NCBI GenBank assembly: GCA_965202585.1
Contig: OZ241831.1
Span: 17,484,001 to 17,548,000, forward strand
DNA from: Thalia democratica
Taxonomy: Eukaryota
Length of the DNA: 64,000 nt
Direction of reading: 5' to 3'
Below the pieces are notes generated by a model, which saw only the letters and a list, made by a program, of their open reading frames with translations, was not told the DNA's origin and made no database searches. The position numbers were made by a program, and so were the translations under genes. This document shows, piece after piece, positions 21,927-29,703 of this stretch (positions within the stretch are counted from its first letter, which is position 1; every line of letters begins with the position of its first letter).

Positions 21927-22638
21927 CTTTTAGCTAGTAAATTCTGAATATTGACAGAGTTTTAGTAATGATACATCTCAAACTCGACTTACTATCAATT
22001 AAACCTGGTACAGGAAAAATTATCAAATAGTTTGATAGTCTAAAATATCTACATACTTTCATTCTAACTAATTTCCACAATAAAAAAACACTTACTTCTT
22101 TATACTAAAACAATTGTAATACTTATCTTGACAAGTGAATAATTAGGAGTTATTAAAAAGAGATTAACAAAACTATCTCATACGTGATTACTTGAAATAT
22201 TCTAGAGCTTAATTAACCAAAAAATATGAAAAAACTATAAATAATTTTATCAAGAAAAAGAGTACAAAACTTTTTTTTATTCTTAATTTTTTTAAATTGC
22301 ATGAAGTTATAGTAAATAAATAAAATTGTTAGTTATAACATTTATTTTACAACAAAAATTTTCTACGTAGTATTAACTAAAATCAAATCAGTAGTATAAT
22401 AAGTTGTATATATCCTTAAAAAGTGTCTCTTTTTTAACTAAAGGTTCAATATTTTTTGTTCATTAAAGGAATTTATAACAAATAAAGTGAAAAAAAAATT
22501 AAAACAAAATTCATAAAAAGGACAACTTAACTATTAAATTTTCAACAACCTAAATGATTTAAACTAAAATAGTTTTCTTTAAAAACTACTAAAGAACTCT
22601 TTACAACGCTGTAAATATTTATTTTTATAGTTAAACAA

Positions 22639-25600
22639 CTACATTTTGATACTGAGGTCAACAAAGTGGGGCACTTTACAACCGAAGCCTTGCGCGGTTT
22701 TGACAAGATCCAGCTTGGTGACGTCAAACGCCTCCTTGTGCTTGTTGGCTGCGTACTGTCCGATGTAACTTTTGTACGCTTCTTGTGAGTTTTGATGCAG
22801 GGCATACATCTGTGAATAAAGTTGAGTAAACAAAAATAATTTTACAACGCATTTAAAATACTCTTATAAATTAATAAAAACTGAAGTACTGTAATACGAA
22901 AGAAGTTCAAAACTGTTCACATTTCTTAATTCGCTTAAAATTGTGAAGTATACATTTATTTACAATTTTTTTGTTTGTAAATAATTTTTTTTATTTTTTT
23001 CACATGTTATAAGTATATTAATTTGTGTTGAAAATTTATCTATTTTAACAGTTCTGTTATATTGTTTCTTAGCGCAACTTTTGAATTTTTATATTTCAAA
23101 GTATTCTTTTTTACTTTCAACCCCGAGTTGGTTTTATAAATGATATATTAATTAAAAATCTGGTTAATTAGAACATCATTACAAACTATTTACCATACTT
23201 TTTCTCTTTCAAAACATAAATAACTTTTTTTTTGAAACTTTTAGCCAGCAAAAAAATAATTTTTTGGAATATAATCTAAAAATACACAATTTCGATTCTT
23301 TAAAACTATTAAAGCAAAAAAAAAAGAAGCATTTGAACAATCTACGGAAGATGTAAAAAAAATATTATAAATTTTTACTACATTATTTAAGCTTAAAAGT
23401 CTAATTAATCCTATTTTTAGATATTCGATGACAATCAAAATTAGCTATAAAGAAAAAAACTTGATTTTTTCGATACAAAAATCTGATATAAGAACTTCGA
23501 CAAACCTCGGCGGTCAAACTATTGATTTTTCCCTGCACGCTCGACTTCTGCATGGGGGTGATTTGCGAGGACTCGGTTTCCAGCAGGTCGAGGAAGGAAG
23601 ACTCGTGCTGCCTGAGAAACAAGATGATCTGCCGGGTGCAACCAACAAGCTGGCCATTCACCTGGCACGCCGATTGCGGAGGATCGTAGTAGATGATGCA
23701 GTGAGCTTCGGGCATGGCGAAGCTCTTGGCAGAGTTCTCGCTAATCAGCAGGATTCCCGTCTCGCAATTGCAGAAATCTCTGAACACCTGAATTTTCGTT
23801 TAACAAGCTTGTTAGGAGTCTTTCGAGTAAATATTGTATGAACAACTATTAATTTTAAAATTTTTAATGACTTTGTTTCTGCTACTTAAATATTTTTGAA
23901 CGATGGTAGTTTTTTAATAAACAGATTTTAAGATAAAAATTTTCTGCGCGTTTTCATTAATAAGTTTTACTTATTTGCTAAGTTAGGCTTTAATTTCTAT
24001 AAATAAAATTAAAAGAAACAGCAAAATAAATGAGATTGATAAAAAGTTACCTGCAAGTTGTCTTGCCTTTTCTCGAAATAGTTGTGCACTGCATAACACT
24101 CTACATCGAGATGATTGAGCAAATCTTCATGGTATTTCACAGACATGGAAGTTGAAAAATAAACAATTACTTTTGATGATTTCGCTCTCGTCAGCATCGT
24201 GTGAAGGGTGGCGAGTCTTTGTTATTTAAAATTTATCAATTTAAATAGTATGTGGTAATAATAATGATTAATAAAAAATCATAACCAGTGATGAGAATGA
24301 ACTTGCAGTAAAACAAAAATACATGGTTTCAGCTAAAGATATAAAATAAAAAATATAAATTAATAAAACTGGTATTTACAATTAGTTATTAAAATTAAAA
24401 TATTTAAATTTTAAACTTTAAATTGCTTTAAAAAAACCTTTTTTCTGATGCACAGTACAAATAGTCCAAAGTGCAGTCAACCGTATCATCGTCTTCTTTC
24501 TCTTCTATATTGTCAAAGTAAAGCGGACCGGTCTTCAACACGATTTTGGTCAAATTCTCAGTTTTCTGATAGTCACTGGTGCACAGTACAGACTGCCTGG
24601 TTTTCGGAAGATACTGCATTGCTTTAATCAAATTATCCTCCAATCCCAAGTCAACAATCTCAGCAGCATTGCTTACCTGATAATATTTTTTATTTGTTTC
24701 TACTTTTCTGTAAACATTAATATTACTCGGACGGTTACTTTTCATAGTAAATGCTTCAAAACACATTTTCAAATATATTTACTAGATTTACCTTTATTTA
24801 TTAAAGATCTCTTTACCAGATTTATATATCTAAAACTTAGTCATTTAAAATAATTCTATTCCAATTATAAACACACAGTATTTACATAATGTTTTTATTT
24901 TCAACTCAAAAAAAAAACTACTAAGTAACTACAAAAGGATGGAAATTTTTGTAAACTCAATAAACTTATAAAATCTATTCAAAATTTTTTTTATCATCCT
25001 AATAAGAAAAAGCGATGTTATCTGTCCTAAAAGTATAAATAACTTAAGAAAATTTTTAAAATAAATTATGTATTAAGTGTTTGATGTAATATATTGAACA
25101 CTTTTTAAGTAATTGAAATACAAAAAAAAACATTTTATCATTAAGAGCAGTAAAACATATAACTTCATATAAAAAAAAACAATAATATAAACATTGCTTA
25201 TTAGCGAAATAACAAGTAGTTAATTTTTCAATAGCCAACTTACGACAAGATACTGAAGATTTCTTTTTTGAAGATCAGCGGTAGTTTCAAGATGGTGCAA
25301 GAGCTTTCCGGGAGTGCATACTAGAATATTTGCTCCTTTCTCCAACTTCTTACGTTCATTTTTAACGTCCTTTTTAAACATTACTCCAATTAAACAAAAT
25401 GAAAAATAACAAAAAACAGAAAATTTTAGTAAACTAAACTTTATTTAAAAAGAGCATATGTTATTTACTAATCACTCACATTTAGAAGTTTAATAAATAA
25501 CTAATAGCTTGAAATTAATATCTTAATTAGATAAAATAAATTAAACTAAATAAAGTTTTTTTTTTGTAACATTTAGAAAAACTTATTTAGTACTTGGATT

Positions 25601-28140
25601 AAAGTTTTTTTTTTAGATATTTAAATTTCAATTTACAAAAGCATATCCTTAATACATTTTATTACAAAATAAATAAATTATTTATTATTTGTATTATTGT
25701 TGGAAGATTTTTTGTCGTAAATAAATACCATTTGCAACTAAATAGTTAAATAGTTTTATCTATTATTAATTCGAAGCTTTTCGTCTTACTTCCATAAAAC
25801 TTTATCAAGAATGAAAGATAAGTTATTAATTAATTTTGCAATAAGTTTGTAACTTGTAATATTATGACGTAAACAATAGATACTTTTTTGGTTTGAAATG
25901 TTAATAACTGTAGATAATAAATATGCTAATTTAACAAAACTAAAACAAATTTATAACAAAAAACACTTAAAACAATAAATTATTATGTATAAATATATAG
26001 TGCTTTTTTTAAGTTTATGAACTTTATCTAGTTAAAATTCTAAAAAATCATAAAGATGCAAAAATTTAAGGAAAAGCAAGCAAAGTAGGAACCCTACATC
26101 TTATTGTGCACAATCCAAGCAGCATAATTTATTTATAATTTAATTTATATTAAAAAACCATATTACCTTTCCATTGACTGCCATCACGCATTTGTACTCC
26201 ATTCCTTCCAAAAGCTCTCTAAAAACACACAAAAGTTCTTGAGCCTCTTCAGGGTTGGGCACCACGAAGACAGCGCCGAGGCCGTGCTTGGGAGACATTT
26301 GGAGCTGGTGAACGATTTGAACAGCTCTGACCAGCAGCAGCGTCTTCTCAACACCTTCAGTGCGAAGTAGCATGTCGCATCCTTTCAACAGAGGCTGCTG
26401 AACTTTCTGCTCGCTGCTGTTCAAGTACTTTGCCTGATGAAATATATTTTTTAGAACTATGTACTTTTGTGAAAACTATAAATAAGGCTGGAAATATTTA
26501 CTGTTTTGTTTTTAAGGCTAAACTTTGAAAAATTTATGTTGAAAACTCTAAACTTTTATATTATACACTTAAAGAAAGCAAAACAGGTCGTTGAGTATTT
26601 TACACTGTAAACTTTTTTACATTTTTAATAATTACTATGCTACTTTTTTAAATTGCTATTAAATTATTTTTTCCAAATTCATTTAACATCTACAACTTGA
26701 TAATGAAACTTGTATAGTCTTGAAAATGTTTGTGAATAAAATATAAAACAATAATGAGTATTTTCTATATACTTAGTAGAAATGGTATAATTACGTTTAA
26801 AAACATTCCTATAATATTACTATGCTAAAGATGTTGAAGTTTTTCTGACTACCCTTTGGTAAAAAAATATCATTTAAAATGTTATAATTTATAATTCTTT
26901 AATTTTACAGTGAATAATAACATTTTTATCTAACACATTTTAAGTTATAATAGTGGAATATCATTAGTACCAATAACTTAATAGGACTTGTAGTTTAGAA
27001 TATCATTTGACTAAATACAAAAGACAGATAATTATAAAATAATTCTTAAAACAAACAAAAACTAAGTAAGCTCAAAAAAATACTAAATTGTAAATACGGA
27101 TAAAATAATAATTTATATAGGAAATCATATAGGCAATAAATCAAAGCTAAATTCTTTCTTCTGTATACTGTTAAATAACCTGCATTTCTTCGATATTGTT
27201 GAGAATTTGAGAGTCTAACTTCAGTAATGAATACAAGTTGTTGGTATTGTTTGATGTTAACTTCTTCATTTTTACCTGGTTTATGTTATATAATTATAGA
27301 CAATATTTTTTTAAGAACAAAATCTTAATAGCTAAACTAACTACTTATTAGAAAAAGCTATCACTATTGTTATTTGTTTTACTGAAAATTGCAAAAATAA
27401 ACATCAATTTAGTTTATAAACTAAAGTTCTACTTTTCGTAATACATATTTGTACCATTCGAATAATTAAAGTAAATGTACTTTTAAAACATTATAAAAAC
27501 TATTGCATTCTTAAATAAAACAAAATTGAACAATTACCTAAATTATAAAAAAAATTACCAAGAAAAAAATAATAATATATTTTATCTATAGATTACTATT
27601 TATTTAGTATAGTGTAAAAATTTGTAATACAATAAAATTCGTGATTAACTAATTCAGAAAAACTTAATTTATTTTAGTATTAAATGCTTTTTATTTGATG
27701 CAGCTTAGAGATACATGGCATTATTAAAAAAGCTGTTTTTAGTAGTGCAACAGCAACGCAAAAACTGATAACTTAACTATTAGTGTTAGCAAATTTTTAA
27801 AATCGAATAAAATATTTTTAAAATTATAAATACAGTTTGTCTAAGAATGTTTTCAGAACACAAAACTTAATTATTAGCTATAGAATTGTATGAAGTAACA
27901 CTCTTTTTATATTTCAACAACTTAAATTACTTTTTACTTCAAAATTATAAAATTAAGTAAATAAATGCTAACTTGTAGCGAAGTTCCAGGTAAGACTTTT
28001 AAGTTTGAAGCTTTTTTAGGTTTTGTAACTGTAACATTTTGCATCAAAACTTTCTTCTCTTTTGGTGCTACTAATGTTTTCTTCTTAGTAGTCTTTTTTA
28101 AAGGTTTCTTTTGAACTTTTAAATTTTTTGAACTTGTCAT
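22639..28140 (-). CDS. DDX18-like: DDX18/HAS1-family DEAD-box helicase paralog with degenerate catalytic motifs, 8 exons, 504 aa
   Basis: Exons 28140-27973, 27275-27180, 26433-26167, 25369-25244, 24676-24438, 24216-24051, 23787-23506 and 22809-22639. All junctions are GT-AG and phase-compatible, with no internal stop. DDX18-specific blocks: PKHGLGA, CTPGKLLHHL, SEKRL, VYFSTSMSVKYH, YDPP, QEAYKSYI and FGCKVPHFVDL. Confidence 0.9.
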
Positions 28141-29703
28141 TTTGGTAGTTTACTTATATAAATACTGTTTAAAATAATATTGAATTAAAAGAAAGAAATT
28201 TAATAATTATCAGCAAACTTTGAATATTGCAGCTCATATTTTTTTATGATTATGAGTATTAAAAATATTACAATATAAATGTATAACTTTTAAACAAAAG
28301 AACCTAAACTATTTATATAAAATCAATTGAATAAATTTTAACAGGTTTATTTATTAAATTAAACAATGTTCAAAGGTAAGTAAATTTAATTTCCGTATAT
28401 ACACTGAGAATTTCATGAAATTTTTTTATTAGATTTAAAACTATAACAACAAAAATATTTTTTGTATAAAAAAAACTTTATAAAAATTTGACACAGAATT
28501 GAGTTTGAAAACTTTTAAGGACTTAATTTTCAAAAACAAACTGTAAGTACAGACTTAAAAACAAATTATTTATATACAAAGTAAGTTAATAACAACATAC
28601 ACTGATTTAAAATAGTAAACTGTATATATACATACGTTTATAATTAGTAATTAACAACACATCACTTATATTTCTGTTAAAAAAAGTGTTGTTTTAAAAC
28701 ATTATGTGTTACAATAATACTTAAAAATATTCTTTTAAGCTAGCGATAAGAGATTTTTTTTGAACTTGTAATGATAGTTATACTTTTTAATAAAAAAATA
28801 ATAATTTTTGGCTGGGGAGGTAACCTTACCATTTTTTTTTGAAGATTGTGAAAAATTGGATTGATATATCTATTTATTTTAAGTGTTTTTGAACTAAATT
28901 TTAAAGACTATTTGAAGGTTATAAAAACAAAATCAACTTTTAAAGAATATATTTAATTATTAGCTCAGTCATTACAAGTTGACTAAAACTAGATAAGTTT
29001 AGAACAGAACAGATTAGAAAACTGACATTAGGGTGTATATTCTGCTTTTTTAAGACTTTAATTTCCTTTAAAAAATTAAAACACTATTTTCTTTTATAAA
29101 AAGAGCTTCGTAAATCAAATATTTTGTGTTTTATACACGCATTATACTTTTTTTCCAGAAAGTTCTAATTTCAAAGTAGACATTTCTAAATTTTCATAAG
29201 TTAGAGAATATGTGAAATTAAATTGTACTTTAGTATAAAAAATTGCAATATTTTAGTTTATATCATTTTTCTTAATTTATAATCTAAATTACTTTGTTTT
29301 ACAATAATCTTTTCTATCTATTAAATCATAGAAAACTATTGCACATTTATCAATCAAGTAATGCTTCAAAATATTAAAACTATAAAATAATCTAAGGTAT
29401 CTTCAAATAAATATCTAAAAAAAAATATCAGACAAATCTAAAAACTAATTAACATAAAAAAAAGAGGTTAATTTACAAATAAAAACGATTTTAACATTAT
29501 AAAAACATAAAAAAATAGAATTAAAAACCTTAATAAGAATATTTTTATTTTTGTTTCATAAAAAACTCTGGAGTAAGTTGGGCAAATAAATATATTTTGC
29601 AAAAAAACGTATTAAAAACTGTATCAGACAAAAATATTGCATAAAAACATCATTAAAAAGGCAATCAAAGCAAAGAACAGTGATCAATAATATTTTGTAT
29701 ATA

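Follow-up and report, generated by a model that had tools for sequence, protein, structure and literature searches.

A gene on the minus strand of a 64,000-nucleotide stretch of the genome of the planktonic tunicate Thalia democratica (assembly GCA_965202585.1, contig OZ241831.1, positions 17,484,001 to 17,548,000; the whole stretch is the window, and positions below are counted within it) descends from the DEAD-box helicase DDX18/Has1 and has exchanged nearly every motif on which helicase activity depends. The favoured reading, held at a probability of about 0.8, is that this gene encodes a functional descendant of tunicate DDX18, predicted to be unable to bind or hydrolyse ATP, that would act as a non-enzymatic binding module, in other words a pseudo-helicase. 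Degenerate catalytic motifs, expression and selection, the combination by which a pseudo-helicase is recognised, are all found here, and the evidence for each is set out below together with the explanations that compete with this reading.

The gene and its transcripts

The gene runs from 28140 to 22639 in 8 exons separated by 7 GT-AG introns. Its model was built from eight open, DDX18-like minus-strand segments in a six-frame translation of 22500-28300, which were joined at GT-AG sites, and the resulting frame of 1515 nucleotides (nt) holds 504 codons and 0 stops, with an in-frame TAA 12 nt upstream of the ATG. The window as a whole has about 25% guanine plus cytosine (GC). In the introns, at about 20% GC, a stop falls every ~10 codons, yet exons as long as 94 codons stay open and join in frame, and the open spliced frame is for this reason far beyond chance. 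The parts of the gene are as follows.

Exon 1, 27973..28140, minus strand: ATG at 28140; Lys-rich N-terminal tail, amino acids (aa) 1-56, net charge +15; covered by metatranscriptome contigs; 88% conserved at the amino-acid level in contig L021 of a related species.
Exon 2, 27180..27275, minus strand: aa 57-88, upstream of the Q motif; junctions 27275/27973 and 26433/27180 present in RNA contigs.
Exon 3, 26167..26433, minus strand: aa 89-177; degenerate Q motif, Walker A and motif Ia; GG changed to NG.
Exon 4, 25244..25369, minus strand: aa 178-219; motif Ib TPGKL kept; Pfam DEAD match below the cut-off.
Exon 5, 24438..24676, minus strand: aa 220-299; DEAD changed to SNAA and SAT to TSD.
Exon 6, 24051..24216, minus strand: aa 299-354; start of the second RecA-like domain; motif IV VYFSTS...VKYH kept.
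Exon 7, 23506..23787, minus strand: aa 355-448; motif V changed to SENSAKSFA, YDPP kept, motif VI region replaced and shortened.
Exon 8, 22639..22809, minus strand: aa 449-504 and TAG; Has1/Spb4-type C-terminal extension; basic C-tail of canonical DDX18 absent.
3' untranslated region, at least 91 nt, 22548..22638, minus strand: covered by an X1 contig that extends from 22548 across exon 8 and, past the splice junction, into exon 7.
Seven introns, 22810..27972, minus strand, interleaved with exons 2-7: 697, 746, 797, 567, 221, 263 and 696 nt; 16-23% GC.

Parts of the locus are present in four marine metatranscriptome runs, and the contigs placed on 22500-28300 omit exactly all seven predicted introns. 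One joint is off by 1 base, a shift attributed to a substitution in a relative: the final base of exon 4 is changed there, as it is in L021 too. A single RNA contig of 1067 nt joins exons 6 to 1. One run (X1) supplies contigs with 99% identity or more to the window, which cover the junctions 8-7 and 7-6 and reach into the 3' untranslated region; in a second run (X2) the depth in intron bins is zero. Because all seven introns are spliced out in the RNA contigs, contaminating DNA cannot be their source. The gene is transcribed and spliced as modelled. The original prediction, made from the letters of the window alone, had described seven GT-AG introns and an unbroken frame of 504 codons and had named a spliced transcript as a check upon itself; exon joining bears out the former, and the latter is found with all seven of its junctions. 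Two exon-junction patterns searched for as a spliced cDNA contig among Joint Genome Institute (JGI) metagenome contigs gave no match.

Several smaller observations concern the same locus. One X2 contig follows the gene as far as 28129, a point 11 nt within the coding sequence, beyond which it has 67 letters that are present in neither the window nor the genome; these may reflect a relative's alternative or divergent 5' end, or a chimeric contig, and given their absence a spliced leader or an upstream exon encoded in this genome is unlikely. Transcripts of a relative lack 6 nt, in frame, at 28024 in the Lys-rich exon 1, which suggests that the N-terminal tail tolerates changes of length. GC at third codon positions (GC3) is 0.52 over the gene and 0.76 in exon 7. 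These high values were considered as a sign of foreign origin and rejected as such, since GC3 spans 0.23-0.89 across other genes of the genome; within this genome of 25% GC, an open frame at G000:C5:16.43 Mb (L009) has 0.89 and canonical DDX18 0.23.

Family membership and helicase motifs

A profile built from 119 canonical DDX18 proteins matches the spliced protein in one colinear stretch (aa 36-503, 293.7 bits, E 4e-91), and the protein is about 32% identical to the genome's own DDX18, colinear over its full length with insertions or deletions of at most 6 residues relative to canonical DDX18. In tblastn, the canonical DDX18 locus is hit with E 1e-66 versus 2e-26 for a DDX55-like locus (L007), and exons 6 and 8, compared on their own with all PDB chains, match human DDX18 and fungal Has1 only. 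Exon 8 carries the Pfam family CTE_SPB4 (PF13959), its score of 42.3 bits (E 7.7e-11) lying well over the cut-off, 27. Scanned singly, exon 4 reaches 21.5 bits for DEAD (PF00270), below the cut-off of 26 (E 2e-4), and exons 3, 5, 6 and 7 have no Pfam match, Helicase_C (PF00271) being found on neither exon 6 nor exon 7. The DDX18 family has 261 columns with an invariance of 97% or more, and 105 of them (40%) are kept. Judged by these matches, the gene belongs to DDX18/Has1 by descent.

How far it has departed from that family is apparent when the protein is aligned with the canonical DDX18 of this genome and the DDX18 proteins of Ciona, Styela, Takifugu and Talpa. The position of the Q-motif Gln is occupied by Glu96 (26418-26404). 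Walker A, AKTGSGKT, has become TE-GVEKT through a 1-residue deletion and a change of Gly to Glu before the Lys (EGVEKT at 26358-26341), and motif Ia, P(T/V)RELA, has become PNPEEA (26259-26242), with Glu in place of Arg. DEAD of motif II is replaced by SNAA (aa 221-224, 24673-24662), SAT of motif III by TSD (aa 252-254, 24580-24572), TDVAARGLD of motif V by SENSAKSFA (23742-23716) and HRVGRTARG of motif VI by the shorter QVNGQLVGCTR (region 23676-23629). Further RNA-contact motifs are likewise changed, GG to NG and QxxR to an altered form. Motif Ib (TPGKLL; TPGKL at 25315-25301), motif IV (VYFSTSMSVKYH), YDPP in exon 7 and the C-terminal extension (22785-22654) are kept. Of the DEAD-box motif set only Ib and IV therefore remain, and Q, I, Ia, II, III, V and VI are replaced. 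The replacement of these seven motifs and the retentions, together with a Lys-rich N-terminus, had been called in the original prediction, and the alignment agrees with every one of them.

The general character of the protein has changed as well. The N-terminal tail, with 16 Lys and Arg in 56 residues, is strongly basic, and the core (aa 57-504) has a net charge of -5 and an isoelectric point (pI) of 6.3, versus +22 and 9.5 for the core of canonical DDX18, whose basic C-tail is missing here. Residues invariant specifically in DDX18 are kept at 48 of 133 positions (36%) versus 57 of 128 (45%) for those invariant across DEAD-box proteins (Fisher p 0.17).

By established DEAD-box enzymology, loss of the Walker A Gly or loop, of the motif II acids, of SAT, of the motif VI arginines or of the Q-motif Gln is enough, even singly, to abolish or cripple activity. 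A shortened P-loop with Glu before the Lys would be expected not to hold the phosphates of ATP; SNAA in place of DEAD would offer neither the Mg-binding Asp nor the catalytic Glu; and the arginine finger of motif VI would be gone. Taken together, these three losses are expected to preclude binding of ATP, its hydrolysis and the ATP-driven closing of the RecA-like domain pair around RNA. That the protein is still an ATPase or helicase, working through a non-canonical active site, is a very improbable alternative: the Walker A Lys-Thr pair (in EKT) and motif Ib survive, and the segments that were once motifs I and II do not vary in the three species compared below, but the P-loop is one residue short with Glu for Gly beside its Lys, the Q-motif Gln is displaced, both DEAD acids, SAT and the motif VI arginines are lost, and Has1 Walker A mutants are without ATPase activity (PMC9196750).

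Orthologs, origin and introns

Orthologs were sought by exon-wise searches and were found as gene fragments on plankton metagenome contigs of Tara Oceans, a source that also supplies close relatives of canonical DDX18; the sample comprises three closely related taxa, the window species included. Species B is represented by a 6.3 kb contig (L021), on which exons 1-7 have the same lengths and splice sites as in the window gene and the dead motifs recur. Over 422 codons the synonymous divergence (dS) from species B is 0.261, the non-synonymous divergence (dN) 0.033 and their ratio 0.125 (bootstrap 0.07-0.20), and the introns have diverged by 0.21-0.49 substitutions per site, much as dS. Exon 6 differs by 0 non-synonymous and 11 synonymous changes; the highest reliably estimated ratio is that of exon 1, 0.30, the 0.68 of exon 2 resting on 4 changes. 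In species C, where L028 covers exons 3-6 and L017 covers exon 7, GVEKT, SNAA, TSD and degenerate motifs V and VI are again present in exons of matching length, with dN/dS of 0.105 over exons 3-6 (dS 0.84) and about 0.095 in exon 7 (P0001/L017), where it is 77% identical.

What has been lost is thus held in its lost form. GVEKT, SNAA and TSD are invariant in the window gene, L021 and L028, and SNAA and TSD are identical in P0129 also; the former P-loop and DEAD segments do not vary among the three species, and motifs V and VI are the most variable. Among family-invariant positions, those that have changed are identical across the three orthologs in 88 of 116 cases and those that were kept in 82 of 89, so that the gene has settled into a new sequence state that is itself conserved. 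Its dN to species C, 0.088, stands against 0.046-0.079 for canonical DDX18 between relatives, a rough comparison, as the pairing of contigs with species is insecure (dS values disagree), from which only a comparable dN is claimed. Exon 7 alone, searched by phmmer against 1.84 billion representatives, finds the Tara fragment P0001 as its sole ortholog, and with this one-exon query no ascidian, appendicularian or vertebrate protein scores better than E 1e-6. By these substitution rates, purifying selection acts on the gene in no fewer than three species of planktonic tunicates. The description of it as selected and catalytically dead consequently stands, selection being read from dN/dS of 0.10-0.13, not near 1, in relatives that share the dead motifs, and death being inferred from motif chemistry. 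Binding to RNA or pre-ribosomes, or competition with DDX18, which the original prediction also proposed, is a candidate role, and that prediction is supported in part.

The parent of this gene is still present. The whole assembly (~802 Mb) was searched with PF13959 and with the canonical DDX18 protein, and the separate canonical DDX18 for which the original prediction had called proved to be there and intact: a single intronless copy with all motifs at G000:C8:41072237-41073937 (L004), whose best named relatives are those of Ciona, Phallusia, Clavelina and Styela at 61-70% identity. The window gene is itself single-copy. A second intact paralog (L005; G000:C6:63885152-63886492, minus strand, intronless, 463 aa) is 65% identical to canonical DDX18 and keeps DEAD and GKT, with SAT changed to YGE, HRVGRTAR to HRVGNLPR and motif Ia to SDDERA. 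It appears to be a young duplicate, because it shares derived residues of the canonical pelagic clade, and it may perhaps be a second helicase heading to inactivity. Five further intronless copies, 57-85% identical to canonical DDX18 (L001-L003, L008), are broken by stops and frameshifts; they lie at C2 62.65, 63.22, 63.39 and 63.59 Mb, four within 1 Mb of a single chromosome-scale contig, and at C7 30.10 Mb.

Such dead copies, and the extremely long stem branch described next, are what could be said for the view that the window gene, though transcribed, is a relic with no function, a duplicate in decay that has kept an open frame by luck. That view is scarcely credible in the face of dN/dS of 0.10-0.13 in two independent comparisons, of exon lengths and splice sites that are identical in three species while introns have diverged like synonymous sites, and of 504 codons free of stops in an AT-rich genome.

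Maximum-likelihood analysis places the window gene together with its ortholog inside DDX18, among tunicates and outside the canonical pelagic clade; their stem is very long, at about 10 substitutions per site. Forcing the gene into the canonical pelagic clade costs 10 log-likelihood units (approximately unbiased (AU) test p 0.013, post hoc and on a long branch). Long-branch effects bear less on a count of characters: at 31 positions derived in the canonical pelagic clade, the window gene has the ancestral residue at 13 and the derived one at 2, versus 1 and 16 for L005, and at 21 positions that separate ascidians from vertebrates it agrees with ascidians 6 times and with vertebrates once. On the strength of these counts and the tree, the gene descends from tunicate DDX18 and split off before canonical DDX18 of the pelagic lineage took on its distinctive changes. 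That it might be a recent duplicate of canonical DDX18 is rejected on the same test and the same 2 derived versus 13 ancestral residues. The word paralog, used in the original prediction, accordingly holds insofar as an intact gene sits beside canonical DDX18, and requires the qualification that it is lineage-restricted and extremely diverged and is no recent copy.

The introns add a history of their own. The coding sequence of canonical DDX18 is intronless in this genome, in Ciona (L023), in Styela (L031) and in Clavelina (L032), and Takifugu DDX18 (L024) has 14 exons and 13 introns. Apparently this essential gene was replaced by, or reduced to, an intronless form before the split of ascidians and the pelagic lineage. 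None of the seven introns of the window gene lies at any of the 13 Takifugu positions, the nearest being 7 alignment columns off, and a relic of an intron-bearing ancestral gene is in that respect unsupported. The simplest reading of these positions is that an already intronless DDX18 was copied and that the copy later gained introns; intron sliding, or an ancestral structure outside the present sample, would be an alternative source of them. An introner or transposon origin was considered and set aside, as the introns resemble neither each other nor the rest of the window.

Function and known counterparts

If the protein does not burn ATP, its value to the cell would lie in what it binds. The two-domain body and the Has1-type C-terminal extension could form a rigid or hinge-like docking platform; the Lys-rich tail could serve nuclear or nucleolar targeting or unspecific contact with RNA; and the rebuilt, slightly acidic core could bind proteins instead of clamping RNA. 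A docking scaffold with rebuilt surfaces is favoured because the charge of the core is reversed, the RNA-contact motifs are altered and residues specific to DDX18 are not preferentially retained, and such a scaffold may be nuclear or nucleolar through its tail. As to partners, the leading candidate, at somewhat less than even odds, is a new, lineage-specific set and thus a neofunctionalised scaffold of the kind represented by MUT-15; sites or partners of DDX18/Has1 in pre-ribosomes come second, and the rest falls to other partners.

The serious but weaker alternative to a rebuilt scaffold is a Has1-like, ATP-independent place on the ribosome precursor, at which the protein would still dock at the DDX18/Has1 site on the nucleolar pre-60S (or 90S) particle, or on DDX18 partners, with a structural role or as a competitor or dominant-negative factor tuning ribosome production. 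This is possible, and doubtful. DDX18/Has1, a DEAD-box helicase of 90S and nucleolar pre-60S particles, is the evolutionary parent, and from it the window protein keeps CTE_SPB4, the Lys-rich N-tail, Ib and IV, the extension and the tail speaking for docking of this kind. Further, the binding of Has1 to the 5.8S/25S region does not require its catalytic activity (PMC6846684), and Has1 Walker A mutants, their ATPase lost, are dominant negative, catalysis perhaps mattering for the 90S role only (reviewed in PMC9196750). Has1 catalytic mutants in this sense indicate what an ATPase-dead Has1 can still do, namely bind 5.8S/25S pre-rRNA and act as a dominant negative; they are, however, single-site laboratory changes, whereas the window protein has 60% of invariant positions changed and its new state conserved. 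From the parent it also differs in seven replaced motifs, an acidic core, the missing basic C-tail and seven introns in place of the intronless tunicate DDX18. The shift of core charge from +22 to -5 with loss of the C-tail, the alteration of motifs Ia, GG, QxxR and V that would contact RNA, the retention of only 40% of DDX18-invariant columns overall and the rates of 36% for DDX18-specific versus 45% for pan-DEAD-box invariants all count against docking at the Has1 site, and the acidic core together with the absence of preferential retention weakens a simple pre-60S mimic.

Two established pseudo-helicases offer points of comparison for the scaffold reading. Utp25 (Def) is a DEAD-box-like pseudohelicase of the small-subunit (SSU) processome (PMC9539457), a structural ribosome-assembly factor whose helicase motifs are dispensable or degenerate, and it shares degenerate motifs with the window protein, for which a two-domain DEAD-box-like body such as that of Utp25 is predicted; it would be the closest analogue in function, should the window protein still be at work in making ribosomes. 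Utp25 is, however, ancient, pan-eukaryotic, essential and not derived from DDX18, whereas the window gene is lineage-restricted and its parent can be recognised. In C. elegans, the CPUG complex has as a scaffold MUT-15, a DEAD-box-like pseudohelicase in which DEAD has become NNAE and ATPase activity is absent (bioRxiv 10.64898/2026.09.04.749402). The likeness lies in the replaced DEAD (NNAE there, SNAA here), the lost Q motif and the expected lack of ATPase activity, and in a helicase body repurposed as a docking scaffold in a lineage-specific pathway, which is what is proposed for the window protein. MUT-15 differs in parent family and pathway and in its large positive RNA-binding patch, the core of the window protein being net negative. 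Closer to home, L005 resembles the window gene in its intact open reading frame and some degenerate motifs, and differs in being young and intronless, in keeping DEAD and GKT and in its 16 of 31 versus 2 of 31 residues derived in the pelagic clade.

Some points must be set against the scaffold reading as a whole. Retention of the fold of two RecA domains is read from a colinear alignment with short insertions and deletions; the expression evidence consists of assembled environmental metatranscriptome contigs, which show splicing, and not level, tissue or RNA ends; the species identity of the ortholog contigs is inferred from divergence; and dS to species C by the Nei-Gojobori method (NG86) is near saturation in exon 7.

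A more complete account, which is tentative and on balance unlikely in its full detail, would have an old tunicate duplicate of the intronless DDX18 rebuilt as a nucleolar or ribonucleoprotein (RNP) scaffold, its use of ATP lost, its core charge reversed and seven introns gained, that regulates ribosome production or another RNP pathway in pelagic tunicates, for example as an antagonist or partner of DDX18 in their burst-like growth.

In the searchable, and incomplete, full-text literature there is no relevant report of a DDX18 pseudoenzyme, of a tunicate DDX18 derivative or of a DEAD-box paralog with lost ATPase motifs, and the original prediction, whose author did not recognise the protein as described, is in agreement with this. 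What is new is a lineage-specific pseudo-helicase with a recognisable and still-present parent; pseudo-helicases as such are already known. Their biology in this case may be narrow, and the lineage is an unculturable planktonic tunicate. The intron history is a clean case in its own right, with a canonical DDX18 that is intronless and a derivative with seven introns, none at a vertebrate position. Helicase-derived pseudo-enzymes are few, and Utp25 and MUT-15 are too old or too diverged for an active parent to be named. If the more complete, tentative account above is true, the window gene would be the first natural pseudo-helicase with a recognisable active parent that is still present, and a direct model of the passage from DEAD-box enzyme to scaffold. 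More broadly, DDX18 and the window gene form, within one genome, a natural before-and-after pair in which the derivative is expressed and constrained and its replaced motifs are conserved, and through which it may be asked which parts of a DEAD-box protein matter without catalysis and what an ATP-free, Has1-like body binds.

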